Assembly: GCA_002269645.1 (NCBI GenBank)
Contig: NIVC01000509.1
Location: forward strand, 62,001 to 126,000
DNA length: 64,000 nucleotides
Reading direction: 5' to 3'
DNA from: Macrostomum lignano
Lineage: Eukaryota
Part shown: piece after piece, positions 11,803-55,016 of the stretch
Position numbering within the stretch: the first letter of the stretch is position 1
Layout of the letters: every line of letters begins with the position of its first letter
The notes under the pieces: model-generated
What the model saw: the letters and a program-made list of their open reading frames with translations, nothing else
What the model was told of the DNA's origin: nothing
Database searches by the model: none
Made by a program: the position numbers and the translations under genes

Positions 11803-16887
<5,085 letters not shown>

Positions 16888-18623: not shown

Positions 18624-19322
18624 CTAGCAATCTAGTGCCCCCCTTCGGGGCGGCCAATGAGCAAGGGACGAATCCTTTATGAAAATAATTCTTAATTCGT
18701 TTATTAATTAATTTATAAATAGAATAGAATTTAATAATTAATTCTATTTTTTATTCTGGGATTATGTATAAATCAAACATATGCTATTTAACCATGCTTG
18801 CCATCTTTCAGAGCAATAGCGTGCTACTTCTGTAGCCGGGGGGGCTCCAGGTATTACACGGCAAGCAGTACGCCCTGCAACGGCTGCAAAAGCAGCAACA
18901 GCAGAAAAAAATGTTACTCATTGGCAGAACAGTTGGCTATAATACCAAGAGGCGTCAGTGGCGCTTTTGCAGAAGGCTTCACCAACAAGATGGTACCATT
19001 GCACAAATTCTGTTACGAACATTTCATTGGTGGCAATCTTACCACTTGTTGGCTTGCTTTAGTCTGCACAGCTGGTCATAGGCATTCACTTGGGAGCATG
19101 TAAATTTCACTCATTACTAATGAGCATTCAAAAACAGTTACAACCCTCCTCTTTTTGCAACCGGGCTTGGGACCGGCTTTGGCAGAGTTAAAGCCATCAC
19201 AAGAGACTATCTGGGGTTTGCAAAGGCTGCTTCAAACCCCCTCTGGCTGCATTTGCATGTACGAGGGCCATTCCAAAAGTTCATGCAATCAGACATTTTT
19301 TATTACAACAAAAAGCTGCTAA

Positions 19323-20127
19323 TTTGGGCTTCTATCACTGCACTACGAGACTCTCTGGCCGAACCCTTCATTTGGAACATTAATTGATTGAATTATCCTA
19401 TTGCTTGGAAAAGGACTCTAATTGAGCTTGTATCACCGCAGTATCAAGACTGTCTCTGACCGAACCCTTCAATTGGAACATTAATTGATTGAATTTTCCT
19501 ATTGCTTGGAAAAGGACTCTAATTGAGCTTCTATCACCGCAGTATCAAGACTGTCTCTGACCGAACCCTTCAATTGGAACATTAATTGATTGAATTTTCC
19601 TATCGCTTGGAAAAGGACTCTAATTGAGCTTCTATCACCGCAGTATCAAGACTGTCTCTGACCGAACCCTTCAATTGGAACATTAATTGATTGAATTTTC
19701 CTATTGCTTGGAAAAGGACTCTAATTGAGCTTCTATCACCGCAGTATCAAGACTGTCTCTGACCGAACCCTTCAATTGGAACATTAATTGATTGAATTTT
19801 CCTATCGCTTGGAAAAGGACTCTAATTGAGCTTCTATCACCGCAGTATCAAGACTGTCTCTGACCGAATCCTTCAATTGGAACATTAATTGATTGAATTT
19901 TCCTATCGCTTGGAAAAGGACTCTAATTGAGCTTCTATCACCGCAGTATCAAGACTGTCTCTGACCGAATCCTTCAATTGGAACATTAATTGATTGAATT
20001 TTCCTATCGCTTGGAAAAGGACTCTAATTGAGCTTCTATCACTGCAGTATCAAGACTGTCTCTGACCGAATCCTTCAATTGAAACATTAATTGACTGAAT
20101 TTTCCTATCGCTTGGAAAAGGACTCTA
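19323..20127 (+). repeat. 101-bp tandem repeat (~8 copies) in the Helitron 3' region
   Basis: GGAACATTAATTGATTG recurs at 19374, 19475, 19576 and onward. Confidence 0.95.
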
Positions 20128-21459
20128 ACAAACTCCACAAATTAGCACGAAAGTCAACTTCTAATCAACGGGCATGCATTAATACAACTTACTTCCAGGA
20201 ACTTAATCTGCACAAGTGCACCGGCAACTGGAATAAGCAAATGGCATGAACTTCTGGATTGAACCACGTATTAGAGTGGAAGAAATCTACCAGGGACATA
20301 CAAAAGCAGCGAAATGTCCATTTCAACCAACTCTCTGTCAGGCCCAGCACGTCTGCAGCCAGCCTGCTATCAACATTGACAATGGCAAAAATATCTCTTG
20401 TATTAATTTAATAATTCATCCTTAATATTGCTTTAACAAAGATAGACCAGAAGCTAGTAATTTCTTTTCTGGAATCTAAACGCAAAAATTAAACTGTATC
20501 ATATCTTTCCTAAGGTATCAATTTCTTAGAATCCCATTAAAGAACTTCTTAGAATGCCATTAGATAGGATGCCTGCTATTGGGGAACCCACCAAGTCATA
20601 TTTTACTTAGCCAAAATTGCAATCAAGTTTTCGGTCCACTTTCCTTATCGACCATCTTATTGCGCATTATGCCATAAGATGAAATTACGAGTATTAGAAT
20701 GCTATTACATGAGCACCTTAGAATTCCAGTATAGATACAATTCTTAGACTGTCATTAGATGAGATTCTGATGAGATGACAGATAAGTTAGAATGCCTGCT
20801 CGTTTTGTGGGGATGCCTGCCTTGTCTGCTGCCTGTTGTGTCACAAATTTTCCTTAAGCACCCAATTTAAAGGTCATATTCATGCCAATGCCAATGCAGC
20901 AGGAATTTTAGCATGTAGGGCCAAGGTAGCAATTATTTTTCCATGCTAAAATTTTACTTGTGATGGCTTTTCAACACATGTGCTTCAAAAACTCACTGAT
21001 TTCTTCAACTGCTAGAGAAATCTTCGCATAACATTCTGCTTGTTTCATCCGCCTGCGCACTCCAGTCGATTCGTGTTGACTCGAGTTGGCTCTCATCAGA
21101 CGGCACCAGTCTGTATAGTTTCTGTTGAACGTTAAATTCAATGAACAAAAGTTTACAGGTCTGCATCAGGAGTGACAAAATAGATATACGATTATGGAAT
21201 GGGTCACGAATAATAAAATAGATCAGAGATTACAAAAATAGATCATGGTTCACACAATGGTCAGAAAAGAAAGAATGGGTCTGAAAATATCCTTTCATTA
21301 TTTCCCACTTACAGTACACTTTTGGAATTTGCACTTTCAAGTCCCCGTTGTCACTGCCATGGTACAACATAGTAATCACCATCACCACGTCTAGTTTCAC
21401 TACATTATGGCTTGAGCAAAACATGCAAACATGTGTACATCATCAACTCACGCATATGC

Positions 21460-24400
21460 CTAGTCTCCTGTAAGCACTTCAGGGTAAACCACGTTCCTAG
21501 TCTTGGTTCCGAAAATTCGCACACGGACATTAGCCGCGTTCTTCGCTCGTGACAGAGCCGTGTACAGCTGGCCATGAGTGAAGCAACCGACTGCCAGGTC
21601 CACGCCAACTGTGTCCAGAGACTGTCCCTGCGACTTGTGGATCGTCAGGCAGAAACTCGGCTTCACAGGGAACTGCAGCCGCTTAAAACTGACGGGCAGG
21701 TCCGCATTGCTTGGAATCAGCGGAATTCGCGGCAGAAGAATCTCGTCTCCCGTGAACTGGCCGGCGGCAATCTTGCATCTAAGCACGTTATCGCCCATTG
21801 CGAGTATGATCAGCCGCGTACCATTGCACATCCGTGGCGGGTTGATGTTCCTGAGAAGCACCACCGGCATACCGACTTTCAGCCTCAGCAAGTGAATCGG
21901 AAAGTTTGGAGCATCCAGCTGGTTGAGCAACTCAGGCGGGAAGTGCGTAGCGGCATCCTCATCGGCCACGCTGTCTATCGAGCGGTACTCCCGCAGGCTG
22001 CCGGGGAACATGCCCAGGCACGTCTCATTAATGGCATCGACAGAGTCGTTGTAAGGCGCCAGGATCGCTCGGCTTGCAAAATAGCCGTCTCTCTCCACTG
22101 ACTCCTCAAACGATGGGTAAACAAAATTGATTAGATCAGTGAGTGGCCCCTCCGCAGATATCACGATCTCGATTGGGAGGGACACTTTCTCCTCCACATC
22201 CTGCTCCATTGTTCCAGATCCGATCTGTGAGGAGTGAAACAGTTAGTCAAAAGCTAGCCAGACTTTTAGGTTAGACATTCTGAATAAAGCACAATAAAAG
22301 CACTTTGCATTTTTTCCACAAAAACCCGCCCTTTAAATTTAACGCCCGGAATTATTAAATATTTAAGTCAACAAAGACCAAACTTACCTGCTTGAGTAGC
22401 TCGGTGTACTTCACATATGTTGCAGAATCGGAACTGCTCAGCAATCGGATGTTTCTCGTCAGACGATGCCGCCGGAAAAATTTCCACAGCGGGGATCTAC
22501 TAACACACGCCATAACGTTATTCGCACGCGTCCCATTCAAAACAACTGGCAAGAGCTGGCGAAAGTCACCAGCGCAAACAAACACCAGTCCGCCGAATGG
22601 CACGTCCTGCTTTCGCACGTCTCGCAAGCACCGGTCGACTGCCTCCAAATCCTTCCGGTTAGTCATGGAAATCTCGTCCCAGACAATTAGACGCGCTGTC
22701 CGAAACACGGCGGCTTGTTTGGACTGCACTCCAACAGAGCAGACGTCCTTGTTAGAGCGGACCGCCCGGATAGGGATCTTGAACCTGTCATGAACAGTTG
22801 GTTTCGGCGCAATCATGTACAGCGGAACAATGCGGCTTAGTCAGATAGTAAGCAACTCACGTGGAATGCGCAGTTTGTCCACCTGGCAACAGAGTCGCTG
22901 CGATTCCAGAAGCCGCAACGGCGAGGGCGACTTCCCCCCGGCTGCGCACGAAGGCCAGCAAAACCTCCAGTAGGAAGGTCTTGCCAGTGCCAGCGGGCGC
23001 GTCCAGGAAGTGCAAGCCGCCGTTGCCGCTCACAAGATCCTGAGTCACTGACTCGTACACCGCTTTCTGCTCGTCTGTCAGCATTGGTAAGCGCGCCTCA
23101 GTAATCTGCGCTTGCTCGACCGCATCGAACTGCATCGGTCCAACTTGAGGCATCGCGGATGCCGCAGGCAGGCCGTAATCTGGCAGGTTGTTCCCGCCCA
23201 TGGAGGTCAGCATGCTCTGCAGCTCGCGCAGCGCCAGGTCAGTAATCTCCTCGGTGCTCAAGTCTCGGTGATGAAACCGCAGGTCCTCGCACATATCCTC
23301 GGCAAAGCTGCACCAGAGGTCGTTGCCATCATCAGGGTCACCCCATATGAGAATGACAGCCAGAAGATGTCTCAGGGCTCTTGGCATTCTTGACTGAACG
23401 GCCTCAGCTAGGCACCGCCGCCAGTGGTCATCTCGCTGCAGCAGGCCGAGGGCCATGCAAGCAGCCTTGGCGCTCGGGTGCACAACGCCATCCACAGTCA
23501 GCAGCGCCTCAAAGCTGGTTGGTCCCCTAACCTGCAAAAGGAGCATGCGAACATAAAATAAATCACCAGTTCTTGGGCTCACCGTGTACATGCGTGCAAC
23601 GTTTGTGTTCCGCACTACACCCGGGTGGCCATCGACTTTCGCGCCTCGCTTCGCTCGCCGCCACACTCTTTCACTGGCATGCCAAACGAAGTAGGACGGC
23701 ACTCCGTGTAGAGCAAGGACCGAGCAAACTCGTCAGTACGACACAGCTTGAAAAATGCCGTCAACGTAGAGTCCCTCGGCGTCCTGGCTCTAGCACTTGC
23801 GGTCTGCTCGTTGAAATACACGAGCTGCTCCTCCGACTTGTGAACGCAGAGCCGGATGACCGCCGGAAATCTGTCGTGCACCTGATCAGAAGGTGGGAGA
23901 AATAAATACCTTTAAAGTTGTTGCTGACTTCTAAAGCTCACAGCTTTGCAATATTTAAAATTTAAAATACTTATTACTTCAAAGCCCAAAATGGTATTCA
24001 CGGCTTCCATTGGGCCAATGTAGCGCGCAGACAGATACTCCTTGATTTCATCACGCGGCCTCTCTCCATCGTTTGCCGCTACCGTTTCTGCCGGCTGTTG
24101 GCTACCCACAGCCTGCTCTCTCGGATCAGTTGAATTCTTATTGGCGTCGACTTTGAACGTCGCCATGTCGCCGCCCTTCAGCAAGTACTTGATCACGTAT
24201 TTGACCGACTTCACAGTGGCACAAACTTCAACGTTCATGTGGCACGCAAACTGGAGCAACAGGTCAGGGCTGTACGGAACAACCCACCTATATTTTTATT
24301 AAAAAAAGAATGTCATTAACTTTTAAAAATACAAAAGCAGAAAAGTACAACCAGGCAATATCATTTCAACTCGCCTGTTGTCCATGCGAATGCTGCGGCC

Positions 24401-27400
24401 TTTGAACAGTTTGTCCACCGTAAATCCGCCCATCTCAGGCGAGCGTCTGCGATACAAAGGGTAGCCAGTATCGCTGGTCAGCGTCACCTGCTGGAACTCC
24501 TTCGGAAAGCCCTTGCTGCATTCGCCATTCTCCATGCAAGGGCACGCCGGATTCTCCTTGCCGCAGGGGCCATGGATCATGTGCGTCTTCACCAGCTCAT
24601 ACAGCACAGGCTGCTGCTCTGGGTCCGGAATCTCGGCAGACACGATGTCATCGTATCGGTCCGGAGTCACCCGCTGGCCACTCGCGAGCCACAGCAGAAA
24701 GTGCACATGGGGGAGACCTGAATTATTAAAAAAAATATCGAAACATTTTTCAATTCAGTTATCCAATTTGTATCGAATTTGCATCACACAAACCATGCCT
24801 ATATTTAGTATTTTTGTAACGATATAAATATTATAAAACTTAACACTCAGAGTTGTACTCACCACGCTTTTGGTACTCTAGCGAGCAGACGTGCGCGGCC
24901 TCTTTCCCATAGCGCTTCGTTAGCTGAGCCAGCAGAGCTTTCTTCTTCATTTCAAAGACTCGGCTAACAATGTCCGGCCGGTGTTCAGCCCGCTGTCCAG
25001 GCAGCAGCTGGGCGCTGATCTCCGGCCATTTCGGATTGCACGTTGCGGTGACAAACAGGTCCGGCTTACCGAACTTGTGAACATAGGTCATAGCGTCCTG
25101 AAGCCTCTCCATCAGGTACCTTGGCCCGCCAACAAAGCTCGAGGACAGAAGCACATGCGCGGGCTTGCCTATGTCACTCGGATCTCTGTCGGTAGACCTG
25201 CCATCGGCTGCAAACAGAGCGTCCCGCAGACCGCTATACGTCTCGCTGCGCAGGTCCTGCTGATGGGTCCGCAAATACAGCAGCCTCTCTGCCTCAATCT
25301 TGGCACACATGTCCACCAGGTACTGTTGAAATAATCTTCGGCCATAGTGCAGCACACTGAACTGGCCCGCTCGCACCATGATTTCGCTTGCATAGTATTT
25401 CATGGGGGTCAATTTCTTGTCATTACTCATCCGCAACTCTGGGTGCCAGCCGTCCTCGCCATTCGGGAACAGCAGCACATACTCCAGCGGGTCATATGAG
25501 CGGTGCGTCTCACTGATTCGCTGAGAACCGCCACCACGCAGTTGAATCACGACGTCCCGACTGGCCGGTGCGTCCTCATTGTCCTCAACGATCAGGATAC
25601 CGACCTCGTTTGCCGTAGGCAAGTTGTAGCGCCTGATTTTAACGGAGTTCATGGGATACAAATTCTGTAGAAACTGAATCACTTATTACGCTTATTTTAC
25701 TTCTGCTTTCGTTTACATTTTTAAGTTTCGTTATAACAAACACACTAACTTACCGAATGTGTTCCCCAGATGGTCGACGGTCAGGGTGAATCACAATTCG
25801 CGCATCTCCCAGCTCTGGGTCTTGGCTAATTCGCTCAGCAGCAGCCTTCAGGCTGCGGACATAGCCATTGCACTCGTGAAGCAGCGTCTGCAGCAGCTCC
25901 AGTAGCTCCGGTTTTACCTTCTGGCTGAGACTCTGGCGGCTTTCGAGTTCGCGATCGTTGAAGTACACCTGTCATCCCTGAGCTTCAGCCGAAGCCTCTG
26001 CAAACAGCGGCGCCGTGCGGTGATGCATCTGGCCGCTGATGATGAAGCTGGGACACCAGCCTGGCACCAACCGCAGTTTGGCACCCAGCGATGTCAGGTG
26101 CAGCGCCGAATTGTAGCTCCTGATGTTGGCCAGGAACTCAACACTCAATCTGTGCCGCCCCATGTACAGATCCGCCAGCACTTGCGGCACGGTGCGGCTG
26201 GGCAGCTTCACCTTGCCTTTGGCGCAGCAGAAATTCCTGGTCTCTGCGCGCCAGAGTAGAGCACCACATTCCTGGCATGCCCTGTTCATTGGGCCGCAAT
26301 CATGGGCCGGGGCCTCTGGCCTCTGTATTCTGTCAGACCTGTGATTGAGTTAAATGCATGCACAAATAGTTACTATAATATAGACTGCCAAAATTTATGA
26401 AATGTACAGTGTAAATATAAAAACTAAAATATAAAAATTACACTGACCAGCAGCACAAAAAGCCTACCTATTTTGAGCAGATTCTGCATCAGAATGACCT
26501 GTACCAAAATGACCTGAATCGGAAAGATCTGCCCTCTGCTCCGTTAAACTCGGCGCTTCTGCATCTGCAACGGGCTCAGAAACTGGCAGTGGATCAGTCA
26601 CGCGCAACGACTCATAGTGTTCATGGCGTAAAAGGATACGCACAATTGCAGTGGGTGGCTGCACAGTGGACATGCAGTACTGCAATACACTGCCATTTGC
26701 CTGATAAATAACCAGGTCAACATTGAAAAAACGGCTTGAAAGTGGCACGACCTCATCAGGAACATAGGTGCCCTCAGAAAAAGACTCATTAATAATGGAA
26801 TCAGCATTATCCGGCAAAACAAAGCCTTCGTCAATTAATTCGGGCATTACCTGCACTGCACGACATGTCAGTTCATGCCTCAAAGACGCTGCATTGGTCT
26901 CAAGCGGAGTGCCCTGCAACTGGTCACATACTGCATGAAAAAAGCAATTTCCATCACCAGGGATTGGAACAACACTTAGCGTATTGAATGGTACCACAGC
27001 TGGTGTGGCCAACTCACTACTGTCAAACCTGAAAGATTGAAGTTATACTTTAGACTCTGAAAAACTCATTCCCACTGATACAGATTCCTAGAGAGTCAAC
27101 AAAAAGTCAATTCTCACAAATGCAGACCCTTACAAACATTCCTCCACAGACAGTTTCTTACAGTGGTTTCTTAGAAATTCTGATTCTTAGCACAAATCCT
27201 ACAAATAAAGATTCTTGAAAACGTATCCTAGAAAAGCAGTTTCTTATATAAACACAGTTCATCTCTACAAATAAACATTTTTTGAAACGTTTCTTAGACT
27301 TAGATATACAGATACAGTCAAATTAAAATGTTCATCTCACCTGTTAACCGACACTCCTCGACGGCGAATTTGGTCGGCCTCCACTCGAGCTCTTCGCTGA

Positions 27401-28026
27401 GCCTCAGTTTCCGTGGCCCTACGCTCACTTGTGCGCCGCCGAGCTGCAGTTAGGCGCTCTTCTCGCTGAGCGTCGGTCTCCACGGCACTCCGCTTAGCCT
27501 TTTGCTGTCGGAGTCCAGCCAGGCGCTCTTCGCGCTGAGCGTCGGTCTCCCTGGCCCTTCGCTCAGTCTCCTGCTGCCGGTGTGCAGCCAGGCGCTCTTC
27601 GCGCTGAGCGTCGGTCTCCCTGGCCCTTCGCTCAGTCTCCTGCTGCCGGTGTGCAGCCAGGCGCTCTTCGCGCTGAGCGTCGGTCTCCCTGGCCCTTCGC
27701 TCAGTCTCCTGCTGCCGGTGTGCAGCCAGGCGCTCTTCGCGCTGAGCGTCGGTCTCCCTGGCCCTTCGCTCAGTCTCCTGCTGCCGGTGTGCAGCCAGGC
27801 GCTCTTCGCGCTGAGCGTCGGTCTCCCTGTCCCTTCGCTCAGTCTCCTGCTGCCGGTGTGCAGCCAGGCGCTCTTCGCGCTGAGCGTCGGTCTCCCTGTC
27901 CCTTCGCTCAGTCTCCTGCTGCCGGTGTGCAGCCAGGCGCTCCTCTCGTTGAACAGCGGTCTCTTGCTGACGTTTCTTTTTGGCATCTCTGCTCTTTTTC
28001 AAAGCGCTGGTGCCACGTCGAGCCAT
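21460..28026 (-). pseudogene. Helitron RepHel gene (charged repeat, OTU protease, Cys-rich region, Rep/HUH, PIF1 helicase), 9 exons, ~1812 aa, one in-frame stop and one frameshift
   Basis: Exons 28026-27341, 27028-26468, 26338-25754, 25632-24863, 24717-24375, 24287-23978, 23881-22861, 22784-22388, 22224-21460 are phase-consistent. Motifs GDGNC/HYESL, FVTATCNP, EYQKRGLPHVH, YVIKYLLKG, APAGTGKT, WDEISM, GDFRQL, TIHKSQGQS. TGA at 25974-25972; 1-nt loss near 23703. Confidence 0.85.
27480..27950 (-). repeat. 69-bp coding repeat (23 aa, REERLAAHRQQETERRARETDAQ) x ~7 in RepHel exon 1
   Basis: Period measured 27522 to 27591; in frame with the ATG at 28026. Confidence 0.9.
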
Positions 28027-28479
28027 TTTAGAATTTGGATCGAAAAATATGATAGGAATTGAATTGAAAAATAAGATAGGTAGAATTAGAATGAAAAAGT
28101 AAAGATAGTCTGAGTGAGGGGTTGTGTGATAATTGACAAAGATAAGAAAACAATCATGACAAACTTTTTATACTCAGCGCACCACCCCCACCCCAAAAAG
28201 CTGTACACTATTCAGTGTTAATAAATGTACGTACACTAAACGTAAATTCTCTCCAGCGCCCGCTGCTAATTAATTGGTCAAGCTGCCCTTTAAAGCCAAA
28301 ATTCTCCTTACAAAACTGCTAATAAAATGGTCAAAGTCAACAAGCAGCGATGAACAAATAGATGTGCAAATACTCGTGCACATTTTACACTCATCTTTTT
28401 TACCACAAAGTTGTTAGCAATGTTGCATTGAAAACTTTCAATAAAAATCGCTTATATATATGAAAGTCGCTCTCTGCTA

Positions 28480-29640
28480 TGCAGTCTTGGTCTTGGTAAT
28501 CCTTGGATTATTAAGAGCAATAATCCTTGGCTTATCGAGTGCAGTAATCATTGATTTATTAAGAGCAATAATCCTTGGCTTATCGAGTGCAGTAATCCTT
28601 GGTTTGCCAAGAGCAATAGTCCTTGGTTTATCGAGTGCAGTAATCCTTGGTTTATTAATAGCAATAGTCCTTGATTAATCAAATGCATTAATCCTTGGTT
28701 TGTTAATAGCAATAGTCCTTGGTTTATCGAGTGCAGTAATTCCTGGTTTAGTAATAGCAATAATCCTTGGCTTATTGAGTGCAGTAATCCTTGGTTTATT
28801 AAGAGCAATAATCCTTGGCTTATTGAGTACAGTAATCCTTGGTTTATTAATAGCAATAGTCCTTGGTTTATCAAGTGCAGTGATCCTTGGTTTATTAAGA
28901 GCAGTAATCCTTGGCTTCTTGAGTGCAGTAATCCTTGGTTTAGTAATAGCAATAATCCTTGGCTTATTGAGTGCAGTAATCCTTGGTTTATTAAGAGCAA
29001 TAATCCTTGGCTTATTGAGTACAGTAATCCTTGGTTTATTAATAGCAATAGTCCTTGGTTTATCAAGTGCAGTGATCCTTGGTTTATTAAGAGCAGTAAT
29101 CCTTGGCTTCTTGAGTGCAGTAATCCTTGGTTTAGTAATAGCAATAATCCTTGGCTTATTGAGTGCAGTAATCCTTGGTTTATTAAGAGCAATAATCCTT
29201 GGCTTATTGAGTACAGTAATCCTTGGTTTATTAATAGCAATAGTCCTTGGCTTATCGAGTGCAGTAATCCTTGGTTTTCCAAGTGCAGTAATCCTTGGCT
29301 TATCGAGTGCAGTAATCCTTGGTTTATTAATAGCAATAATCTTTGGCTTATCGAGTGCAGTAATCATTGATTTATTAAGAGCAATAATCCTTGGCTTATC
29401 GAGTGCAGTAATCCTTGGTTTGCCAAGAGCAATAGTCCTTGGTTTATCGAGTGCAGTGATCCTTGGTTTATTAAGAGCAGTAATCCTTGGCTTCTTGAGT
29501 GCAGTAATCCTTGGTTTATTAATAGCAATAATCTTTGGCTTATCGAGTGCAGTAATCATTGATTTATTAAGAGCAATAATCCTTGGCTTATCGAGTGCAG
29601 TAATCCTTAGTTTATTAAAGAGCAATAATCCTTGGCTTAT
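28480..29640. repeat. 24-bp satellite (GTGCAGTAATCCTTGGYTTATTRA) upstream of RepHel, with a 192-bp (8-unit) higher-order block
   Basis: Tandem units; a 64-codon block recurs in the spurious 28700-29671 ORF. Confidence 0.85.
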
Positions 29641-30514
29641 GGAGTGGAGTAATCTAAGTGTTTTTATTTAGCTTTTAATAAAAAATTTTACACTACTACT
29701 TTTAAACTACTTAGATTCGAACCCAGGTTGCTGCATTAGCAGTCTGGTCTGTTCAGCTCTAGGCTAGCTCTCATCGAAGTTATCACTGAATTTGTACCAC
29801 TTATATAGTTCAACACTCACACAAAGTCAGGTAGAGTAAAAAGTCACGAAGCAGTTATGACATAATCAATTTCTTAGGCAAGTCAGTACCAGTCTCTATA
29901 AAAGTTAACAATATGGTTACGCAATATAAATTGAGTACTGTGCTATGCTTTCACACTCAACGCTGTGACGCAATTCAATTGAGTGTCTTGTGTATTGTGA
30001 TGCAATCTATTTCAGAATCAGAATTCAACCAGTCAGTTTTTCTGCTAGCATTCTTACAATGCATTTCAAGTCGAAAGAGCTGCTTGACCTTTGCAAAAAA
30101 GCATGTTTTTCGAATATTTAATCCCTTTAGCATCAAGCAATTTCTTAGCCACGATGCATGTACTGTCACGGGAAAATTACTGATCGAACAGTGCAAGTTC
30201 GAAGAAAATCGGTTGAGCCGTTTTTGCTAAAATCGATCACACACACACACATGCACACACACACATACCGACAGACCATTTTTAGTATATGGACTAGCAA
30301 TCTACGCCCCCCGTTGGGGAGCCAAAGAAATGCAATACACGTTTTTTTAATAAGCTACATGTATCCTTGAAATCTTAAAAAAATCTCCTGTCAAACCTTG
30401 TAAGCCTTGACATGTCAGTAATTCCCCCCCACAAGCTTTAAGTTATCAACTTCCCCCCTTGACATCACAGCAATGCCCCCAATAAGCCTTGGAAATCTAA
30501 AAACTGTCAACCTT

Positions 30515-41425: not shown

Positions 41426-41449
41426 AGGCGACATGGTGGCTTTTTACTG

Positions 41450-43190: not shown

Positions 43191-43785
43191 TTCTTTGATG
43201 TTTAGCAGTTTTGTTGTGTTTGTTGTGTTTTAATAAAAAAAATCTTTTTGTACTACTAAGATTCGAACCCAGGTTGCTACATTAGCATTCCAGTCTGTTC
43301 GCATCAGGGCTATCTCTTTTCAATTGGAGAACATGAATTGTGGCCCTTATAATTCAATTCTTACAGCAAGTCAATCGGAGTAAAAAGTTATGACATAATC
43401 AATTTCTCAGTCAGCCAGTATCAGTCTCAATTTAAGTTAGCAATATGGTTACGCAATTTCAATCAAGTCGTGTGTGCATTTCTTCGGCACTGTTTTCAAC
43501 TTGTTGTGATGCAATCTTTATCACAATCGGAATTCAGTCAGTCAGTTTTTTCTCTAGCATTCTTACAATGCATTTCAAGTCGAAAATTTGGCTTGACCTT
43601 TGCAAAAAAGCATGTTTTTCGAATATTTAATCCCTTTAGCATTGAGCAATTTCTTAGCCAAGATGCATGTACCGTCCCAGGAAAATTTCTGTTCGAATGG
43701 TGCAAGTTTGAAGAAAATCGGTTGAGCCATTTTTTCTGAAATCTATCGCATAGCTACAGACATTTCATTTTTAGTATATTGGAGA

Positions 43786-44273
43786 AGTGCCTGCTATGCA
43801 CAAACTAAGGCCGACATTAAAGTTCTGGTATTTAAACCATAAAATCGATTGCCCACCTGAAGGCAACCACGTGCATAGCAAGCCGCCATAGTACTCATAC
43901 CTAATGAGTCTAGGCAAATAATCGAGAGTCGTATCTCCGCAGTACTGCATTGTCTACTGTGCACTATCGTCGGCAATTCTAATATAAACTTTATGAAATT
44001 CGAACGCCCACCTTCTAAGGCGCATGAGTGACACGCATCTTGTTAACTGGATAACGTTTGAATAGTGTCTGTCACATTATCAGTAGGCAAAACGCAATAG
44101 TGGTGTGTCACACAAGGGCGAACAAAGTGCACAGTAGACCGCCATACTGCCCATACTTAATGAGCAGAGGCAATTATTTAATCATTTGGCACACATTTCA
44201 ACTTTCCTAAGCTATATACCGCAGTACTGCATTGCCTACTGTGCATAAACCTATCTATCCGAACAGTATACTA
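43786..44273 (+). repeat. ~488-bp direct repeat, copy 2
   Basis: Identical to 18136-18623. Continues uninterrupted (...AGTATACTA|TATCAC) at the point where copy 1 meets the Helitron CTAG. Confidence 0.92.
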
Positions 44274-44500: not shown

Positions 44501-47500
44501 TCCTATATACTAAAAATGAGTTGTCTGTGGGTATGCGATAGATTTCAGAAAAAATGGCTCAACCGATTTTCTTCAAACTTGCACCATTCGATCAGAAATT
44601 CTCCTGGGACGGTACATGCATCTTGGCTAAGAAATTGCTATATATTAAAGGGATTAAATATTTGAAAAACATGCTTTTTTGCAAAGGTCAAGCAAAATTT
44701 TCGACTTGAAATGCATTGTAAGAATGCTAGAGAAAAAACTGACTGGCTGAATTTCAATTCTGATAAAGATTGCATCACAACAAGTCGAAAACAGTGCCGA
44801 AGAAATGAACACACAACTTGATTTAAATTGCGTAACCAATAGGCCTATTGCTAACTTGAATTGAAACTGATACTGGCTGACTGAGAAATTGATTATGTCA
44901 TAACTTTTTACTCTAATTGACTTGCTGTAAGAATTGAATTATAAGGGCCACAATTGATGTACTCCAATTGAAAAGAGATAGCCCAGATGCGAACAGACTG
45001 GAATGCTAATGTAGCGACCTGGGTTCGAATCTTAGTAGTGCAAAATAATTTTTTTATTAAAACACCTTGAAAACATGAAACTGCTAAACATAAAAGAAGC
45101 ACAATGTCAAACATATCAGTGGCACCATGTCGAACATTAAAGAGCCACCATGCCAAACATAAACGAGCCACCATGTCAAGCATTAAAAAGCCACCATGTC
45201 AAACATATTTGTGACTCCATGTAAAACATATATACGTGACTCCATGTCAAACATAAAAGAGCCACCATGTCAAACGTAAAAGAACCTACATGTTGAACAT
45301 TAAAGAGCCACCATGTCAAACGTAAAAGAACCACCATGTCGAACATTAAAGAGCCACCATGTCAAACGTAAAAGAACCGACATGTCGAACATTAAAGAGC
45401 CACCATGTCAAACATTAAAGAGCCACCATGTCAAAAATTAAAGAGCCACTTTGTCATACTTAAAAGAGCCACCATGTCGAACATTAAAGAGCTACCATGT
45501 CAAACATAAAAAAGCCACCATGTCAAACTTTAAAGAGCCACCACGTCGAACGTGAAAAAGCCACCATGTCAAACATAAAAGAGCCACCATGTCTAACAAT
45601 AAAGAACCACCATGTCGAACATTAAAGAGCTACCATGTCAAGCATAAAAGAGCCGACATGTCGAAAATTAAAGAGCTACCATGTCAAACATTAACGAGCC
45701 ACCATGTCAAACATTAAAGAGCCACTTTGTCGAAAATTAAAGAGCTACCATGTCAAACATAAAAGAGCCAACATGTCGAAAATTAAAGAGCCACCATGTC
45801 AAACGTAAAAGAACCACCATGTCGAACATTTAAGAGCTACAATGTCAAACATTTAAGAGCCACCATGTCAAACGTAAAAGAACCACCATGTCGAACATTT
45901 AAGAGCTACAATGTCAAACATTAAAGAGCCACCATGTCAAACATTAAAGAGCCACCATGTCAAACATAAAGGAGCCACTTTTTCGAACATTAAAGAGCCA
46001 CCACGTTGAACATTAAAGAGCCACCATGTCGAACATTAAAGAACCACCATGTCAAACATTAAAGAGCCACCATGTCAAATAATAAAGAGCCACCATGTCA
46101 AACATTTAAGAGCCACCATGAAAAAAATTTAAAGAGCCACCATGTCTAACATTAAAGAGCCACCATGTCCAACATGCAACATTAAAGAGCCACCATGTCC
46201 AACATATATGTGACTCCATGTCGAACATTAAAGAGCCACCATGTCTAACATTAAAGAGCCACTATGTCCAACATGCAACATTAAAGAGCCACCATGTCCA
46301 ACATATATGTGACTCCATGTCGAACATTAAAGAGCCACCATGTCGAACGTTAAAGAGCCACCATGTCGAACATAAAAGAGCCACCATGTAAAACATTAAA
46401 GAGCCACCATGTCTAACATTAAAGAGCCACCATGTCGAACGTTAAAGAGCCACCATGTCAAACATTAACGAGTCACCATGTCAAGCGTATACGTGACTCC
46501 ATGTCAAACATTAAAGAGCCATCATTTCAGACATTAAAGTGTCACCATGTCGAACATTAAAAAGCCACCATGTCCAACATTAAAGAGCCACCATGTCTAA
46601 CATATATGTGACTCCAAGTCGAACATTAAAGAGCCACCATGTCCAACATGCAACATTAAAGAGCCACCATGTCCAACATATATGTGACTCCATGTCGAAC
46701 ATTAAAGAGCCACCATGTCGAACGTTAAAGAGCCACCATGTCGAACATAAAAGAGCCACCATGTAAAACATTAAAGAGCCACCATGTCTAACATTAAAGA
46801 GCCACCATGTCGAACGTTAAAGAGCCACCATGTCAAACATTAACGAGTCACCATGTCAAGCGTATACGTGACTCCATGTCAAACATTAAAGAGCCATCAT
46901 TTCAGACATTAAAGTGTCACCATGTTGAACGTTAAAGAGCCACCATGTCGAACATTAAAGAGCCACCATGTAAAGCATATATGTGACTCCATGCCAAATA
47001 TATACATGACTCCATGTCTAACACATACATGACTCCATGTCAAACATTAAAGAGCCACCCTGTCGAACGTTAAAGAGCCACAATGTAGAACATTAAAGAG
47101 CCACCATGTCAAACAATAAAGAGCCACCATGTTGAGCATTAAAGCACCACCATGTCGAACGTTAAAGAGCCACCATGTCGAACATTAAAGAGCCACTTTG
47201 TCAAACATAGAAGAGCCACCATGTCAAACATAGAAGAGCCACCATGTCAGACATTGGAAGCCACCGTATCAAACATAAAAGAGTTACCATGTTGAACAAA
47301 AAAGAGCCACAATGTAGAACATAAAAGAGCCACCCTGTTAAACATAAAATATACACAATTTCAAATGTAAAAGTAAGTGAATTTTAAAGGAGCCGCTATA
47401 ATGCTAAAGAAATTGTCGCACTAGCTACTTATTGTCTGGTGGATGCTTGCTATTTGGGGATGCTATCTATCTTGGGGATGCTTGCTATCTGGGGGATGCT

Positions 47501-47832
47501 TGCTATCTGGGGTATGCTTGCTATCTGGGGATGCTTGCTATCTGGGGGATGCTTGCTATCTGGGGATGCTTGCTATCTGGGGATGCTTGCTATCTGGGGA
47601 TGCTTGCTATCTGGGGGATGCTTGCTATCTGGGGGATGCTTGCTATCTGGGGGATGCTTACTATCTGGGGGATGCTTGCTGTCTTGCGATGATTTCTTTT
47701 TGCATTGCACTTCATTTGAGTATTTTGTCTGTTTTCTTTGTGAAGGCTTTATTTCACTATTTTTTTGTTACTTACTTGTAGAGAACAGAGACTCTATATA
47801 GATGTCCCCCAACGGGGGGCAAAGATTGCTAG
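44501..47832 (+). mobile_element. Non-autonomous Helitron, type A
   Basis: A|TCCTATATACTAAAAATG at 44500/44501; CCCCCAACGGGGGGCAAAGATTGCTAG ending at 47832. Confidence 0.9.
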
Positions 47833-50800
47833 TCCTATATACTAAAAATTAGTTGTCTGTGGGTAGGTAGGTATGCGATAGATTTCAGAAAAAATGGCTC
47901 AATCGATTTTCTTCAAACTTGCACCATTCGATCAGAAATTTTCCTGGGACGGTACATGCATCTTGGCTAAGAAATTGCTCAATGATAAAGGGATTAAATA
48001 TTCGAAAAACATGCTTTTTTGCAAAGGTCAAGCAGCTCTTTCGACCTGGAATGCATTGTAAGAATGCTAGAGAAAAAACTGACTGGCTGAATTCCGATTG
48101 TGATAAAGATTGCCTCACAACAAGTTGAAAACAGTGTCGAAGAAATGCACACACGACTTGATTAAAATTGCGTAACCATATTGCTAACTTAAATTGAGAC
48201 TGATACTGGCTGACTGAGAAATTGATTATGTCATAACTTTTTACTTCAATTGACTTGCTGTAAGAATTGAGTTATAAGGGCCACAATTCATGTTCTCCAA
48301 TTGAAAAGAGATAGCCAAGATGCGAACAGACTGGAATGCTAACGTAGCGACCTGGGTTCGAATCTTAGTAGTGCAAAAAGAAAATTTAAAAAGATTTTTT
48401 TTATCACAACACCTTAAAAACACAAAACTGCTAAACATAAGAGAAGCGCAATGTCAAACATAGAAGAGCCACTATGTCGAACATTAAAGAGCCAACATTT
48501 TGAATATAAAAGAATTAGCATGTCAAACATAAAAGAGCCACCATGCCAAAAATAAAATAAGCACTATGTCAAACATATATGTGACTCCATGTCAAAGATT
48601 AAAAAGCCACCATGTCAAACATAGAAGAGCCACCATATCAAACCTAAACGAGCCACCACGTCTAACATTTAAGAGCCACCATGTCAAACATTTAAGAGCC
48701 ACCATGTCAAAACATTTAAGAGCCAACATGTCAAACATTAAAGAGCCACCATGTCAAACATTTAAGAGCCACCATGTCAAACATATATGTGACTTTATGT
48801 CAAACTTTAAAGAGCCACCATTTCGAACATTAAAGAGCCACCATTTCGAACATTAAAGAGCCACCATTTCGAACATTAAAGAGCCACCATTTCGAACATT
48901 AAAGAGCCACCATTTCGAACATTAAAGAGCCACCATTTCGAACATTAAAGAGCCACCATTTCGAACAATAAAGAGCCACCATGTAAAACATTTAAGAGCC
49001 ACCATGTCAAACATTAAATAGCCACTTTGTCGAACATTAAAGAGCCACCGTGTCAAACATAAAAGAGCCACCATGTTAAACATTAAAGAGCCACCATGTC
49101 AAACAAAGAAGAGCCACCATGTCAAACATAAAACAGCCACCATGTCAGACATTAAAAAGCCACCGTATCAAACATAAAAGAGTTGCCATGTAGAACAAAA
49201 GACAGCCACCATGTCGAAAATAAAAGAGCCAACATGTAGAATATTAAAGAGCCACTATGTCAAATATTTAAAAGCAACCATGTCAAACATATATGTGGCT
49301 TTATGTCAAACATTAAAGAGCCACTATGCCAAACATAAAATAAGCACTATGTCAAACATATACGTGACTCCATGTCAAAGATTAAAAAGCCGCCATGTCA
49401 AACATAAAAGAGCCACCATGTCAAACATTTAAGAGCCACCATGTCAAACATATATGTGACTTTATGTTAAACTTTAAAGAGCCACCATTTCGAACATTAA
49501 AGAGCCATTATGTCAAACATTAAAGAGCCACCGTGTCAAACATAAAAGAGCCACCATGTTAAACAATAAAGAGCCACCATGTCAAACATAGAAGAGCCAC
49601 CATGTCAAACATAAAAGAGCCACCGTGTCAAACATAGAAGAGCCACCATGTTAAACATAGAAGAGCCACCATGTTAAACATTAAATAGCCACCATGTCAA
49701 ACATAGAAGAGCCACCATGTAAAACATAAAAGAGCCACCATGTCAGACATTAAAAAGCCACCATATCAAACATAAAAGAGTTACGATGTAGAACAAAAAA
49801 CAGCCACCATGTCAAACATAAAAGAGCCACCATGTCAAACATTAAAAAGCCACTTTGTCTAACATTAAAGAGCCACCATGTCAAAGATTTAAGAGCCACC
49901 ATGTCAAACATTTAAGAGCCACCATGTCAAATATATATGTGACTTTATGTCAAACATTAAAGAGCCACCATTTTGAACATTAAAGAGCCACCGTGTCAGA
50001 CATAAAAGAGCTACCATTTAGAACAAAAAACAGCCATGATTTCGAACATTAAGGAGCCACTTTGTCTAACATTACAAAGCCACCATGTGAAACATTTAGG
50101 AGCCACCATGTCAAACATCAAAGAGCCATCATGTGAAACATATACGTGACTCAATGTCAAACATTAAAGAGCCACCATGTCAAACATTAAAGAGCTATCA
50201 TGTCAAACACAAAAGAGCTACCATGTCAAACATAGAAGAGCTACCATGTCAAACATTAAAGAGCCACCTTTTTAAACAAAAAAAGAGACACCATTTCAAA
50301 CATAAAAGAAGTGTCATGCCAAACAAAATGGAACCATTATAAAGCTAAGGAAATTGTTGCACTAGCTACTTGTTCTCTGGTGGATGCTTGCTATTTAAGG
50401 ATGGATACTTGCTTACAAGGGGATGCTTGCTCTTGTGGGTGGAGGGTACTTGCTATCTGAGAGGGGGTTGCTAGATATCTTGCTAAATATTTGGTACATC
50501 GTCATGGCGATGTACCGTGATACGACAGCTGCTGTGACAACACCGGACGGCCTATCGGACTCCTTTGAGACATCCTCCGGAGTGCTTCAGGGAGATACGC
50601 TGGCGCCGTTTCTGTTCGTCCTGGTGCTTGACTGGGTGCTGCGGACTGCTCTTCCTACCGACGACGACGGTTTTCTGCTGCAGCGACGCGTGGGTCGACG
50701 TCAACCGGAGAAGCGGCTCAGCGTGCTTGGCTACGCCGACGACCTCGCCCTGCTGTCCTCGACCGTCGAGGGCGCCCAACGGCAGCTGGACAGGCTGGTT

Positions 50801-52436
50801 GCCGTTGCGGCGAGTGTCGGCCTGGTGGTCAACACGCAGAAGACCGTTGTGCTCTGCGTGCCGGACGACATCGAGGCTGCAATATTTTGCCGAGGCGCTG
50901 ACGGGCAGGCGACCGAACTCCCGCGATGTCAGCAGTTCGTCTACCTCGGCGGTCTGGTTCCAGACGCTCGCGAGGACCTGCGACGCCGCCGCGGGCTTGC
51001 CTGGGCTGCCTTTCGTTCTGTGAGGGCAGTCCTGCAGTCCGAGGCCCTACCGGACCGCCAGAGGGCGGCGCTGTTCCAGGCGGTAATCGAGACCGTCCTG
51101 CTGTACAACGCCGAGACCTGGACGCTGACGGACTCACTCGAACAGCAAGTCGATGCGGCGCACGCTGGTCTGCTGCGCGCCGCCTTCAACATCGGCGTCG
51201 AGCGAGTCACCAACGCGGCACTCTATCGCCGCGCTGGCCTGCCACGTCCAAGTGATCTACTGCGCCGTCGGCGACTCCAGCTCGCAGGCCATCTCATCCG
51301 CGCCGAGTCGTACTGCCCACAGCCGGTGCAGGAGGTGCTGCTGCTCACGCTGCAGGCACCCTACCGGCGAGGTCAAGCGCGAACTCGGCGTTATGTCGAC
51401 TGTCTGCTGGCTGACGCCGGCGCCCCGGACACTGCCGGTGGCGCGGCCTTTGTTCGCGCCCAAGCCATGAAGCGCGCCCTGTGACGCTGACTTTTACCAT
51501 CATGACAGCGTATTTTGTTGTTTTGTTGTTGTTGCATCTAGGTTATGGATAACCTTGCTATCAGGGGTTGCTTGCTGTCTGGGGGATGCTTGCGATCTGG
51601 GGGATGCTTGCTATCTGGGGGATGCTTGCTATTTGGGGTCTGGGGGAATGCTTGCTATCTGGGAGATGCTTGCTATCTGGGGTCTGGGGGAATGCTTGCT
51701 ATCTGGGGATGCTTGCTATCTGGGGGATGCTTGCTATCTGCGGGATGCTTGCTATCTGGGGGATGCTTACTATCTGGGGTCTGGGGGAATGCTTGCTATC
51801 TGGGGATGCTTGCTATCTGGGGATGCTTGCTATCTGGGGTTGCTTGCTATCTGGGGATGCTTGCTATCTGGGGTTGCTTGCTATGGGGGGATGCTTGCTA
51901 TCTGTGGGATGCTTGCTATCTGCGGGATGCTTGCTATCTGGGGGATGCTTACTATCTGGGGTCTGGGGGAATGCTTGCTATCTGGGGATGCTTACTATCT
52001 GGGGTCTAGGGAAATCCTTGCTATTTGGGGATGCTTGCTATCTGGGGGATGCTTGCTATCTGCGAGATGCTTGCTATCTGGGGGATGCTTACTATCTGGG
52101 GTCTGGGGGAATGCTTGCTATCTGGGGATGCTTGCTATCTGGGGTTGCTTGCTATCTGGGGATGCTTGCTATCTGGGGTTGCTTGCTATGGGGGGGATGC
52201 TTGCTATCGGGGGGATGCTTGCTACCTGGGGGATGCTTGCAGTCTGGGGGATGCTTGCTATTTGGGGATCGATGCTTGAATGCTGTCTGAGGATGCTTGC
52301 TGTCTTGGGATGTTTTGTTTTTAAGAGGGAATGTCTATTGTTGTTTTTTAAAGGCTTTATTTCGCTGTCTATTTGTTATTTTTAAAGAACAAGGATTCCA
52401 TCCAGATGTCCCCCATCGGGGGGCGAAGATTGCTAG
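47833..52436 (+). mobile_element. Non-autonomous Helitron, type A, carrying an RTE-like insertion
   Basis: TCCTATATAC at 47833; hairpin plus GAAGATTGCTAG ending at 52436. Confidence 0.88.
50497..51534 (+). mobile_element. 5'-truncated RTE/RTEX-like non-LTR retrotransposon (RT C-terminal half, stop 51484, (TTG)n tail)
   Basis: GVLQGDTLAPFLF, GYADD, VNTQKT, FVYLGG, LLYNAETW, RRLQLAGH; short 3' UTR and TTG tail at 51515-51534. No clear TSD. Confidence 0.85.
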
Positions 52437-55016
52437 TCCTATATACTAAAAATGGTCTGTCTGTGTCTATGTGATCGATTAGAGAAAAAATGGCTGGACC
52501 GATTTTGTTCGAACTTGCACTGTTCGATCAGAAATTTTCCCGTGACTGTACATGCATCGTGGCTAAGAAATTTCTCGATGCTAAAGGCATTAAATATTCG
52601 AAAAACATGCTTTTTTGCAAAGGTCAAGCAAACTTTTCGACTTGAAATGCATTGTAAGAATGCTAGAGAAAAAACTGACTGGTTGAATTCTGATTCTGAA
52701 ATAGATTGCATCATAACTGAATTGTAACTCCGACTTGAATTGAAAATGCAGTGTGGAAGCGTAGCACCAGACTTGATTTAGATTGCGTAACCATATTGTT
52801 AACTGATACTGACTGACTGAGAAACTGATTATGTCATAACTGCTTCGTGTGATTTACTCTATGCTTGGATTTTAAAGTGTTGAATTATATAAGTGCAAAA
52901 TTTGATGTTATCAAAACGATCGATGAGAGCTAGCCTAGAGGTGAACAAACTGAACTGCTAAATGCAGCGACGATGGTTCGAATTTTCATAGAGTACAATT
53001 TTTTTAATTAAAACTTTTCAACGTCAGGAAAACTAAAAGACTTTTTAAAAAGAAGCATCATGTAAAATATCAGAAAAAAGCGTCATATAAAAAATCATAG
53101 ATGCGTCATTTACAAAATCATAGAAGCGTCATGTAAAAAATCATAGAAGCGTCATGTAAACAATCATAGAAGCGTCATGTAAAAAATCATAGAAGCGTCA
53201 TGTAAACAATCATAGAAGCGTCATGTAAAAAATCATAGAAGCGCCATGTAAACAATCATAGAAGCGTCATGTAAACAATCATAGAAGCGTCATGTAAAAA
53301 ATCATAGAAGCGTCATGTAAACAATCATAGAAGCGTCATGTAAACAATCATAGAAGCGTCATGTAAACAATAATAGAAGCGTCATGAAAAAATCATAGAA
53401 GCGTCATGTAAAAAATCATAGAAGCGTCATGTAAAAAATCATAGAAGCGCCATGTAAACAATCATAGAAGCGTCATGTAAACAATCATAGAAGCGTCATG
53501 TAAACAATCATAGAAGCGTCATGTAAAAAATCATAGAAGCGTCATGTAAAAAATCATAGAAGCGTCATGTAAAAAATCATAGAAGCGTCATGTAAACAAT
53601 CATAGAAGCGTCATGTAAAAAATCATAGAAGCGCCATGTAAACAATCATAGAAGCGTCATGTAAACAATCATAGAAGCGTCATGTAAAAAATCATAGAAG
53701 CGCCATGTAAACAATCATAGAAGCGTCATGTAAAAATCATAGAAGCGTCATGTAAAAATCATAGAAGCGTCATGTAAACAATCATAGAAGCGTCATATAA
53801 AAATCATAGAAGCCTCATTTAAAAACTAATGAAAGTGTCATTTAAAAATTAAGAAGCATCATGGTACAATAAAAGAAGCATCATGTCAGACATGAAGGGT
53901 GTCATGTAAAAATTAAATGCAGCTATAATGCTGTGCTGGGGAGAAAAACTGAGACGTAAAGGCTCTCAGAGAATAACTGAGATTACGGGGGGGGGGGTTG
54001 TTTCTGAGATGTCAAAGCAAAAGTCAGAAGCTACTTCAAAGTTCATGTACTTTACTCAATTTTTTATTGCATTCTTTGTTGGCTCGCCACGGGGGGGGGC
54101 GCTGATAGAAGAAGAGTCATGTAAAAAATAAAAGTAGCACTATGTATACATAAAAGAAAAGTCATGTCGAAGTTAAAAGATTCATTTGGGAATTGCTACG
54201 ATGTCAAAGCTTGGTGGAAATCGTTATAGTGCTGTGATTCTTAAAGAAGGAATCACTAAAATGTCAAGGCTTAGGGGAGAAGAATTGCTGAGATTTCAAG
54301 GCTTTAGGTTGGGTTAAAGTTAGGTTTAGGTCAGGTGTGGGTTGAGGGTTATATTTTAGCGGGTTTCAAGGTTAACAGAATAACAGGGGATTTTTTAGAT
54401 TAGAAGGTTTATGGGGGCCATCGCTGACATGTTAAGGCTTACGGGGGGAATAGCTGAGATGGCAAGGTTCACGGGGGTATAAATGAGATTTCAAGGCTAA
54501 AGTCAGAAGCTACATGTAGTTTATTGAAAACTTTTTATTACATTATTTGATGCCTCCTCTGGGGAGGGATCGCTGATAGAAAAAGCGTAATGTAAAAAAT
54601 AAAAGAAGCTTCATGTCGAAGTTAAAAGACTCATTTGGGAATCCCTACGATGTCGAGGCTTGCAGGGAATCGCTATAATGCTGTAGTAGTGCTATAATGA
54701 CTCTTAGAGAGAATTACTGAAATTTCAATGCTTTAGGGTTAGGTTAGGGTTAGGGTTAGGGTTAGGGTTAGGCTTAGGCTAGGGTTAGGGTTAGAAGGTT
54801 GACAGATATTTTTAGATTTCCAAGGCTTATTGGGGGCATTGCTGAGATGTCAAGGGGGAAGTTGATATGTTAAAGCTTGTGGGGGGGAATTACTGACATG
54901 TCGAGGCTTACAAGGTTTGACAGGAGATTTTTTAAGATTTCAAGGATACATGTAGCTTATTAAAAAAACGTGTATTGCATTTCTTTGGCTCCCCAACGGG
55001 GGGCGTAGATTGCTAG
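52437..55016 (+). mobile_element. Non-autonomous Helitron, type C
   Basis: TCCTATATACTAAAAATGG at 52437; hairpin plus CTAG|T at 55016/55017; close inverted paralog of 30294-33277. Confidence 0.9.

Follow-up and report, generated by a model that had tools for sequence, protein, structure and literature searches.

Trains of unlike Helitrons in Macrostomum lignano and the 5′ end of a resident element as their probable target

Introduction

How do Helitrons of different kinds come to lie end to end, with no host DNA between them? The question is raised by a 64,000-nucleotide stretch of the genome of the flatworm Macrostomum lignano (assembly GCA_002269645.1, contig NIVC01000509.1, positions 62,001 to 126,000 of the forward strand), referred to below as the window. 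It contains two chains, or trains, of Helitrons, nine units altogether, six on the minus strand and three on the plus strand. In each train the units are stacked head to tail in a single orientation, and zero host bases separate one from the next.

The choice of site by Helitrons is poorly understood beyond insertion between A and T in AT-rich DNA. On balance, the trains probably arose from insertions, one after another, for which the 5′ end of a resident Helitron served as target. We infer that this end, and not the 3′ end, was the target, and that the targeting works through the transposase’s recognition of it. The observations that bear on this reading, and the explanations that compete with it, are presented below.

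The two trains and their joints

A preliminary description, made from the sequence of the window alone, had listed nine elements in two chains and five joints at which a hairpin and CTAG are followed at once by TCC (CTAG/TCC; here and below a slash marks a junction). All nine units are real and their bounds were confirmed, as were the positions of the five joints (Table 1). The 12-mer GATTGCTAGTCC has exactly five matches in the window, 30291-30302, 33275-33286 and 40733-40744 on the minus strand and 47824-47835 and 52428-52439 on the plus strand, compared with a mean of 0.2 in dinucleotide-preserving shuffles, none of 100 of which reached five. The anatomy is the same at all five: a G+C hairpin, CCCC(C)AnCGGGGGG, leads to CGnAGATTGCTAG, which is followed directly by TCC(T)ATATACTAAA or TCC(T)ATATACTAAAA. 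The type-I joint is, in short, hairpin-GATTGCTAG/TCC. Hairpin stems are 5–7 bp long and are located 13 bases (type I) or 6–9 bases (E) before the 3′ end, with fold energies that are unexceptional in comparison with shuffles. There are 4519 AT sites in the window, and if sites were chosen uniformly a Helitron boundary would be struck about once per thousand insertions.

TCC is kept by type-I 5′ ends that lie outside joints and is absent from type-I 3′ ends that lie outside them; the triplet is therefore part of the type-I 5′ end, and its assignment to the 3′ end was rejected. Ten other CTAGTCC matches, at 7383-15584, were also rejected as Helitron ends. Nine of them come from a 37-bp satellite (5675-9720; 109 copies, 96% identity), and the tenth, at 15578, lies inside a retroelement.

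The units belong to two lineages. Type-I units run from TCC to CTAG, with the 5′ end TCCTATATACTAAAAATG and a 3′ hairpin followed by GATTGCTAG. Units of the E lineage have the 5′ core TATATACTAAAG and the 3′ hairpin CTCCTCCnnnGGAGGAG, then TTCCAC or TTGGCC, then TCG, and they have no CTRR. The 5′ core is common to both lineages; the 3′ end is not. E has autonomous members of its own, and its RepHel is about 55% identical to that of the window. The units named A, C and the autonomous-type unit or “master” are related subfamilies of type I, with some 600 bp of 5′ end at 77–83% identity and a common 3′ terminus; the main difference among them lies in their internal 23-bp satellites, which are themselves related. 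C+ and the minus-strand C unit at 33277-30294 are 98% identical. Thus the claim that unlike families are joined stands for the units as such and for E as a separate lineage, but A, C and the master are only related subfamilies. The order of units given for the trains holds, whereas the E/E and E/C joints are not CTAG joints and the master has proved to be a pseudogene.

The successor of a unit varies: downstream of A comes A, C or E, and downstream of C another C, the autonomous unit or host DNA. The units are therefore independent modules, not internal parts of one element. Neighbours differ in family, satellite content, length (1.2–11.7 kb) and lineage, and so are not the copies of a single element that make up a rolling-circle tandem array. 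Read-through of one element cannot explain joints that link unlike units, as the preliminary description had argued. What is found here is the arrangement described by Du et al. (2008): elements with no internal alignment to one another meet in an exact joint of a 3′ end with a 5′ TC, and no host base intervenes. The plus train as a whole occupies a normal A/T site (tataa/TCC...CTAG/taaat), as had been noted.

Table 1. Positions of Helitron units, joints and associated features in the window.
Feature	Position	Strand	Remarks
Unit A1, non-autonomous type-I Helitron	44501..47832	+	opens plus train; ends; host A as 5′ flank (tataa/TCC)
Unit A2, non-autonomous type-I Helitron	47833..52436	+	ends, satellites
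Unit C+, non-autonomous type-I Helitron	52437..55016	+	closes plus train; 3′ flank CTAG/taaat
Unit A	40736..43783	-	opens minus train; 5′ end TCCAATATAC, preceded by ..cacttc
E unit 1	40735-38005	-	bounds of the preliminary description; hairpin CTCCTCCGAAGGAGGAG and TTCCAC, then TCG
E unit 2	38004-36776	-	bounds of the preliminary description; hairpin CTCCTCCGAAGGAGGAG and TTGGCC, then TCG
E block (both E units)	36773..40732	-	between TCC (40735-40733) and TATATAC (36772 onward) of the next C unit’s 5′ end
C unit	33278..36775	-	starts TCG, not TCC; comparison with sister C units
C unit	30294..33277	-	ends, alignment
Autonomous-type unit (master), 11,670 bp	18624..30293	-	3′ end CCCCGAAGGGGGGCACTAGATTGCTAG/tagtat
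Joint A1/A2, CTAG/TCC	47832..47833	+	12-mer scan, alignment
Joint A2/C+, CTAG/TCC	52436..52437	+	12-mer scan, alignment
Joint A/(TCC)E, CTAG/TCC	40735..40736	-	12-mer scan, alignment
Joint E/E, TTCCAC/TCG	38004..38005	-	hairpin CTCCTCCGAAGGAGGAG end, not CTAG
Joint E/C, TTGGCC/TCG	36775..36776	-	hairpin CTCCTCCGAAGGAGGAG end, not CTAG
Joint C/C, CTAG/TCC	33277..33278	-	12-mer scan, alignment
Joint C/autonomous unit, CTAG/TCC	30293..30294	-	12-mer scan, alignment
RepHel gene remnant	21463..28167	-	STPR-like repeats, OTU protease, Helitron_like_N (HUH Rep), PIF1 helicase
R, 488 bp	18136..18623		directly after minus-train 3′ end; starts TAGTATACT, resembling Helitron 5′ core
R′, direct copy of R, 100% identical	43786..44273		before minus-train 5′ end, two bases (TC) from TCC

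Joints at other loci

The comparison set consisted of the window and 11 loci around RepHel genes from the same assembly, Mlig_3_7 (GCA_002269645.1), 323 kb in total; the added loci carry L numbers. A search pattern blind to the downstream sequence matched 46 Helitron 3′ ends. Forty-one of these (89%, a figure that may not hold genome-wide given the centring of every added locus on a RepHel gene) run straight into a Helitron 5′ end, and in the other five the next base is T. One more non-joint 3′ end, in L008, was missed by the pattern. Joints of all four kinds, I/I, I/E, E/E and E/I, are present, and 34 of them, at 10 other loci, are additional to those in the window. Since the same joints recur at other loci, they are not an assembly accident of the window. 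They are far more frequent than chance would allow and are not limited to identical copies.

At L011 (15534-15640), a type-I 5′ end is represented by about 75 bases, after which come two further E-type 5′ cores and then one E 3′ end. L012, with a RepHel that is 42% identical, has other termini and was uninformative for joints. Viral and metagenome collections scanned with DNA patterns for the 5′ and 3′ ends gave chance matches only, in phage and bacterial contigs; the Helitron family is absent from them. When the annotated proteins of Mlig_3_7 were compared with the window, none was more than about 98% identical, and an orthologous locus was not recovered.

Which end is the target

The three bases after a joint track the upstream partner: TCG follows 21 of 21 E ends and none of 20 type-I ends, and among the eight mixed-lineage joints it follows four of four E ends and none of four type-I ends. 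The C unit at 36775 begins with TCG, and its 98–99% identical sisters begin with TCC. In-silico excision of the E block (40732-36773) leaves a perfect GATTGCTAG/TCCTATATACTAAAAATGGTCTG, the same as the C/C joint at 33278, and excision of E in L011 likewise restores an intact joint. It follows that the point of entry of the E units was within a resident 5′ end, after base 3 and ahead of the TATATAC core. At the sampled loci the E lineage was never seen outside a joint.

Five young autonomous copies within trains provide a second line of evidence. A Helitron 5′ end lies directly downstream in all five, and a 3′ end lies upstream in three; upstream of those in L009 and L013 the DNA is non-Helitron. 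For each young copy a single insertion at a resident 5′ end suffices, and targeting of the 3′ end would need extra, still younger insertions in two of the five. In addition, the five non-joint 3′ flanks are more like the 5′ core than are random A/T flanks (6.2 versus 4.9 of 9 bases, P ~0.007). Given a common 5′ core, unlike 3′ ends and the presence of all four kinds of joint, one shared target at the 5′ end would be the simpler account.

The proposed mechanism is as follows. An incoming copy would integrate at the 5′ terminus of a resident Helitron, which is the site that the transposase nicks to start transposition. If the flatworm transposases nick resident 5′ ends while carrying another copy, this copy would be pasted exactly there. 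A type-I copy would enter at the boundary, which at the head of a train is a host-A/T, the canonical site, and its new 3′ CTAG would then abut the resident TCC. E copies would enter three bases further in, between TCN and TATATAC. Repeated rounds would stack units head to tail in one orientation. The preliminary description had called for a route other than ordinary insertion or read-through. End-targeted insertion in some form does seem to be needed, but ordinary A/T chemistry suffices: the host A and the resident’s first T make an A/T site, so that no new chemistry is required, only a strong site preference.

The target put forward in the preliminary description was instead the CTAG/T left by an earlier Helitron. 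In that case insertion would be aimed at the resident 3′ end, between CTAG and the host T, a non-canonical G/T, and trains would grow downstream. For type-I/type-I joints the final sequence would be identical, the transposase cleaves at CTAG/T too, and a 3′ end does lie upstream of three of the five young copies. Maize lines that have only the upstream member of an adjacent pair would also fit (PMC2267711). We nevertheless consider this alternative rather unlikely. The young copies of L009 and L013, with a train downstream of them, would call for several still younger insertions. Type-I units that follow E ends are without their own TCC in three of four cases, and a freshly nicked incoming 5′ end should have retained it; E units downstream of CTAG never begin with TCG. 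Finally, the 3′ ends of the two lineages are unlike, and each transposase would need to recognize those of the other. The contexts of the young copies, the excision of the E block and the three post-joint bases all indicate the 5′ end.

Several points weigh against insertion at resident 5′ ends. The order of arrival was derived from parsimony on five young copies and from the logic of the E block; it was not observed. At type-I/type-I joints the point of exchange cannot be located, and at L010 (17200) an E-to-type-I joint reads TCG/TCC, so insertion exactly at the boundary also occurs. The joints are known from assembled sequence and not from raw reads, and the sample is biased to autonomous copies. 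The 5′ flank of the minus train is ...cacttc/TCC, with no A there, while its 3′ end reads CTAG/tagtat. The entire 25-kb minus train is enclosed by the perfect direct repeats R and R′, which insertion at 5′ ends does not predict. In maize, the existence of lines with only the upstream element, taken as it stands, favours insertion after a 3′ end, unless such lines had lost the downstream element by a later excision (PMC2267711).

Homologous recombination between the 600-bp 5′ regions that units share was considered as a route of integration and is not supported. From roughly base 17 onward each downstream neighbour has the sequence of its own type, and there is no long mosaic; for E, the exchange possibly took place within the first ~14 bases.

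Movement of single units

The preliminary description had suggested that the trains may move as composite units. Near-identical autonomous copies argue otherwise. Those of L018 and L019 are 99.86% identical over 9834 bp, and their homology ends exactly at the element termini. The L018 copy is solitary (aataata/TCC...CTAG/tttgtt), and that of L019 is sandwiched between two other units elsewhere. A second autonomous element has four copies (L009, L013, L014 and L015), 99.2–99.8% identical, with four different sets of neighbours; homology into the neighbour stops within ~280 bp of the next unit’s conserved 5′ region. Because near-identical copies occur alone or with different neighbours, units transpose singly, not as trains. 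No multi-unit combination was found at two places with different flanks among the window and the 11 loci.

Two candidates for a shared composite were rejected. The order C/C/autonomous is present also in L008, but its units are unequally diverged (89–93% identity for the C units, 69% for the autonomous 5′ region), and on present data the same composite did not move twice. The autonomous-plus-C pairs of L013 and L015 have downstream elements that differ past the conserved 5′ region.

These results bear directly on a further alternative, namely that circles or single strands of different Helitrons are joined off the chromosome, by RepHel acting in trans or by recombination, after which the multimer inserts and the composites are remobilized. 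Helitron circles do bear the same CTAG/TC joint and are active donors (PMC4778049; PMC5876387), and the minus train between its perfect 488-bp repeats looks as if copying or integration of something larger than a unit was recent. With solitary copies and changing neighbours on both sides, unequal divergence of the C/C/autonomous arrays, different elements downstream of the L013 and L015 pairs, and no combination seen twice with different flanks, this route, which is not needed to account for the joints, appears distinctly unlikely.

It is also conceivable that the trains are secondary products, formed when unequal crossing-over or gene conversion acting on the conserved ends rearranged older arrays or copies lying side by side. 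The C units of the window are 98–99% alike in their 5′ parts and 91% in one 3′ part, which is a mosaic pattern; copies in the window are nearer to each other than to copies elsewhere; and the common ~600-bp 5′ region supplies homology. Recombination can rearrange joints but cannot make the first exact CTAG/TCC joint, the young autonomous copies have sharp homology ends in new contexts, as expected of transposition, and neighbours are not mosaic beyond ~17 bases from the joint. We regard reshuffling as improbable. An artefact or chance, with repeats collapsed or mis-joined by the assembler or random A/T insertions falling on boundaries, is hardly credible: repeats do abound in the region, and the perfect 488-bp repeat may itself be an assembly error, but 34 further joints were found at 10 other loci, and by chance about one insertion in a thousand would be expected to hit a boundary.

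The four 99%-identical autonomous copies (L009 7049, L013 7666, L014 7602 and L015 7553) differ in their first 3–8 bases (TCCTAT, TCTAAT, TCTAATCTAAT), and E-lineage joints have stacked TCG, TC and (TATC)n. It seems that the outermost 5′ bases are made anew when a copy inserts. The young autonomous copy of L014 has a 5.9-kb insertion (17753-23647) relative to its 99.8% identical L013 sister.

The repeat around the minus train

The 488-bp repeat is the only hint of the movement or copying of something larger than one unit. Continuity with host DNA differs between its copies: the left copy gives gtgata/tagtat, a good A/T site, and the right copy ggcact/gcaatat. Three origins are possible. The repeat may be an assembly error; it may result from homology-driven integration of a read-through circle; or it may be the 3′ flank, with its look-alike 5′ core TAGTATACT, copied into the train’s first 5′ end. 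On the last of these, host DNA would have been mobilized from the look-alike 5′ end (CTAG/TAGTATACT) and pasted at the train’s first real 5′ end.

A wider proposal can be offered tentatively, although as a whole it is open to doubt. Flatworm Helitron transposases may pick their target by sequence and integrate at real or look-alike Helitron 5′ ends, with E specialized for entry into other Helitrons between TCN and TATATAC. Such behaviour would amount to homing, or to the use of a safe haven, and would build arrays by itself; the 488-bp repeat might in that case be mobilized host DNA.

Transposase and Helitron class

In the master unit a 48-bp satellite separates the RepHel gene from the 5′ region, and a 101-bp satellite separates it from the 3′ end. 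Profile matches on the minus strand at 21460-25682 are to PF14214 (E = 9e-46), PF05970 (6e-36 and 2e-20) and Pif1_2B. The HVH motif is present, and short GT..AG introns interrupt the gene. It is damaged: a stop at 25974-25972 takes the place of a Trp that relatives conserve, and near 23702 a frameshift breaks up the conserved LLYTEVPSYFVW. By these signs the master is evidently a pseudogene, a dead copy. The best relatives of the conceptual translation are RepHel proteins of Macrostomum lignano, with 94% and 84% identity. At the start of the reading frame (27395-27963) a 69-bp tandem repeat encodes 23-residue STPR-like repeats (PF21107), and the search output has the same domain in some RepHel proteins of other animals.

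In their features these are canonical Helitrons (Helitron1), with a RepHel composed of an HUH Rep and a PIF1-type helicase, 5′ TC and 3′ CTRR (type I), and a 3′ hairpin. Insertion between A and T without target duplication is found for the plus train, for the L018 element alone (aataata/../tttgtt) and for the L019 train (gagaaa/../taagta); the exception is the minus train, with its C/T 5′ flank and flanking 488-bp repeat. Assignment to the Helentron/Helitron2 class is not indicated, as Pfam gives OTU, Rep and PIF1 and no endonuclease domain, and the ends are TC...CTAG in A/T, inverted-repeat ends not having been formally searched in this comparison.

The interiors of the other units are varied. 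A1 contains 23-bp and 18-bp satellites, and between the two satellites of A2 there is a reverse-transcriptase fragment (PF00078; 50423-51484) in a G+C-rich stretch, either nested or captured. Both E units contain short telomere-type (CCCTAA)n runs (minus strand, ~39350-39310 and 37065-37040), and E1 has about 1 kb of low-complexity purine-rich DNA as well (39200-38160).

Outside the trains, too, the window is rich in transposons, and as a whole it is dense in Helitrons. On the minus strand, at 55261-59126, another Helitron contributes a second RepHel gene, placed tail-to-tail with the plus train (Helitron_like_N at 58431-59126, PIF1 at 55261-57249). The 3′ flank of the plus train (TAAATTTCTAAAATCCTGG) has a motif in common with 17266-17290 and with the flank at 25192 in L015, possibly the end of a third family. 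Beside the minus train’s left flank, at 17290-17420 on the plus strand, there is a degenerate Helitron 5′ region (..AACCGATTTTCTTCAAACTTGCAC); an older Helitron may enclose the trains. A 21-bp satellite (TTAGAGTGAGACAGGTGCTGA) occupies 10557-17124 and is found again at 59646-60043. It is interrupted by the retroelement (~11953-16887), whose open reading frame at 14446-16887 has reverse-transcriptase and RNase H domains; open reading frames from 11953 have no domain match.

Significance and comparison with known systems

That nine of ten 3′ ends abut a 5′ end belonging to another Helitron suggests that the transposase’s recognition of its own end also guides integration. If true, this would account for the seeding by Helitrons of long arrays and satellite-rich blocks, and would amount to a safe-haven strategy comparable to that of site-specific retrotransposons. 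It is possibly a case of sequence-directed integration by an HUH enzyme. There is also a warning for annotation: programs that take the closest 5′ and 3′ ends as a pair will misplace the bounds of elements in genomes of this kind.

In the bacterial HUH transposons IS91 and IS200/IS605, the target resembles the cleavage site at the element’s own end. The logic is the same as that proposed here, where the target would be a real or look-alike Helitron 5′ end. These elements differ in being prokaryotic and in having short targets of 4–5 bases, and we know of no trains of unlike elements described for them.

The closest precedent is in maize. In the r1 region two unlike Helitrons are joined as CTAG/TC, a G/T joint without a host A, and consecutive insertion was proposed, either at G/T after the 3′ end or at an A/T formed from the host’s A together with the resident 5′ T (Du et al., 2008, BMC Genomics 9:51, PMC2267711). 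The direct CTAG/TC joint between different elements is shared with M. lignano. The maize case was one pair, the first reported in that genome (PMC2267711), whereas M. lignano has trains of three to six or more units, with ~89% of sampled 3′ ends joined. It also mixes two lineages and provides sequence evidence on which end is targeted.

Tandem arrays have been ascribed to rolling-circle replication in bats (Helibat; Pritham and Feschotte, 2007) and in plant centromeres (Xiong, Dooner and Du, 2016), as cited in later papers (PMC2267711, PMC5876387, PMC11934779). As far as the citing papers describe them, these arrays have the same perfect head-to-tail joints in a single orientation, but they repeat one element. 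Neighbours in M. lignano differ in family, length and lineage, and its near-identical copies have different neighbours.

In Helraiser, single-stranded DNA is nicked exactly between the flank and the 5′ TC, and the preference is for insertion at A/T with AT-rich DNA on the 3′ side (PMC4778049). Its circles have the joint CTAG/TC (Grabundzija et al., 2016, PMC4778049; Grabundzija et al., 2018, PMC5876387), which is the sequence of the chromosomal joint in M. lignano. Targeting of resident Helitron ends was not seen with Helraiser in human cells, which have none.

The Helitrons of Fusarium and Metarhizium show self-insertion and multiple stacked 5′ termini (Chellapan et al., 2016, PMC5148889). 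The L011 region at 15534-15640 and the TCG-TC-TCG stacks of M. lignano are comparable to these stacked ends; the fungal cases differ in being Helitron2-like, with inverted-repeat ends, and few, and no rule was derived from them (PMC5148889).

Exact pairs of Helitrons are thus already known from maize and bats, but not at this frequency. To judge from titles and abstracts, the four publications found that mention both M. lignano and Helitrons do not deal with how the elements are arranged. Several features of M. lignano appear to be new: how frequent and how long the trains are, that two lineages are mixed in them, the evidence that the 5′ end is targeted, the rule followed by the E lineage, and the occurrence of E only in joints.

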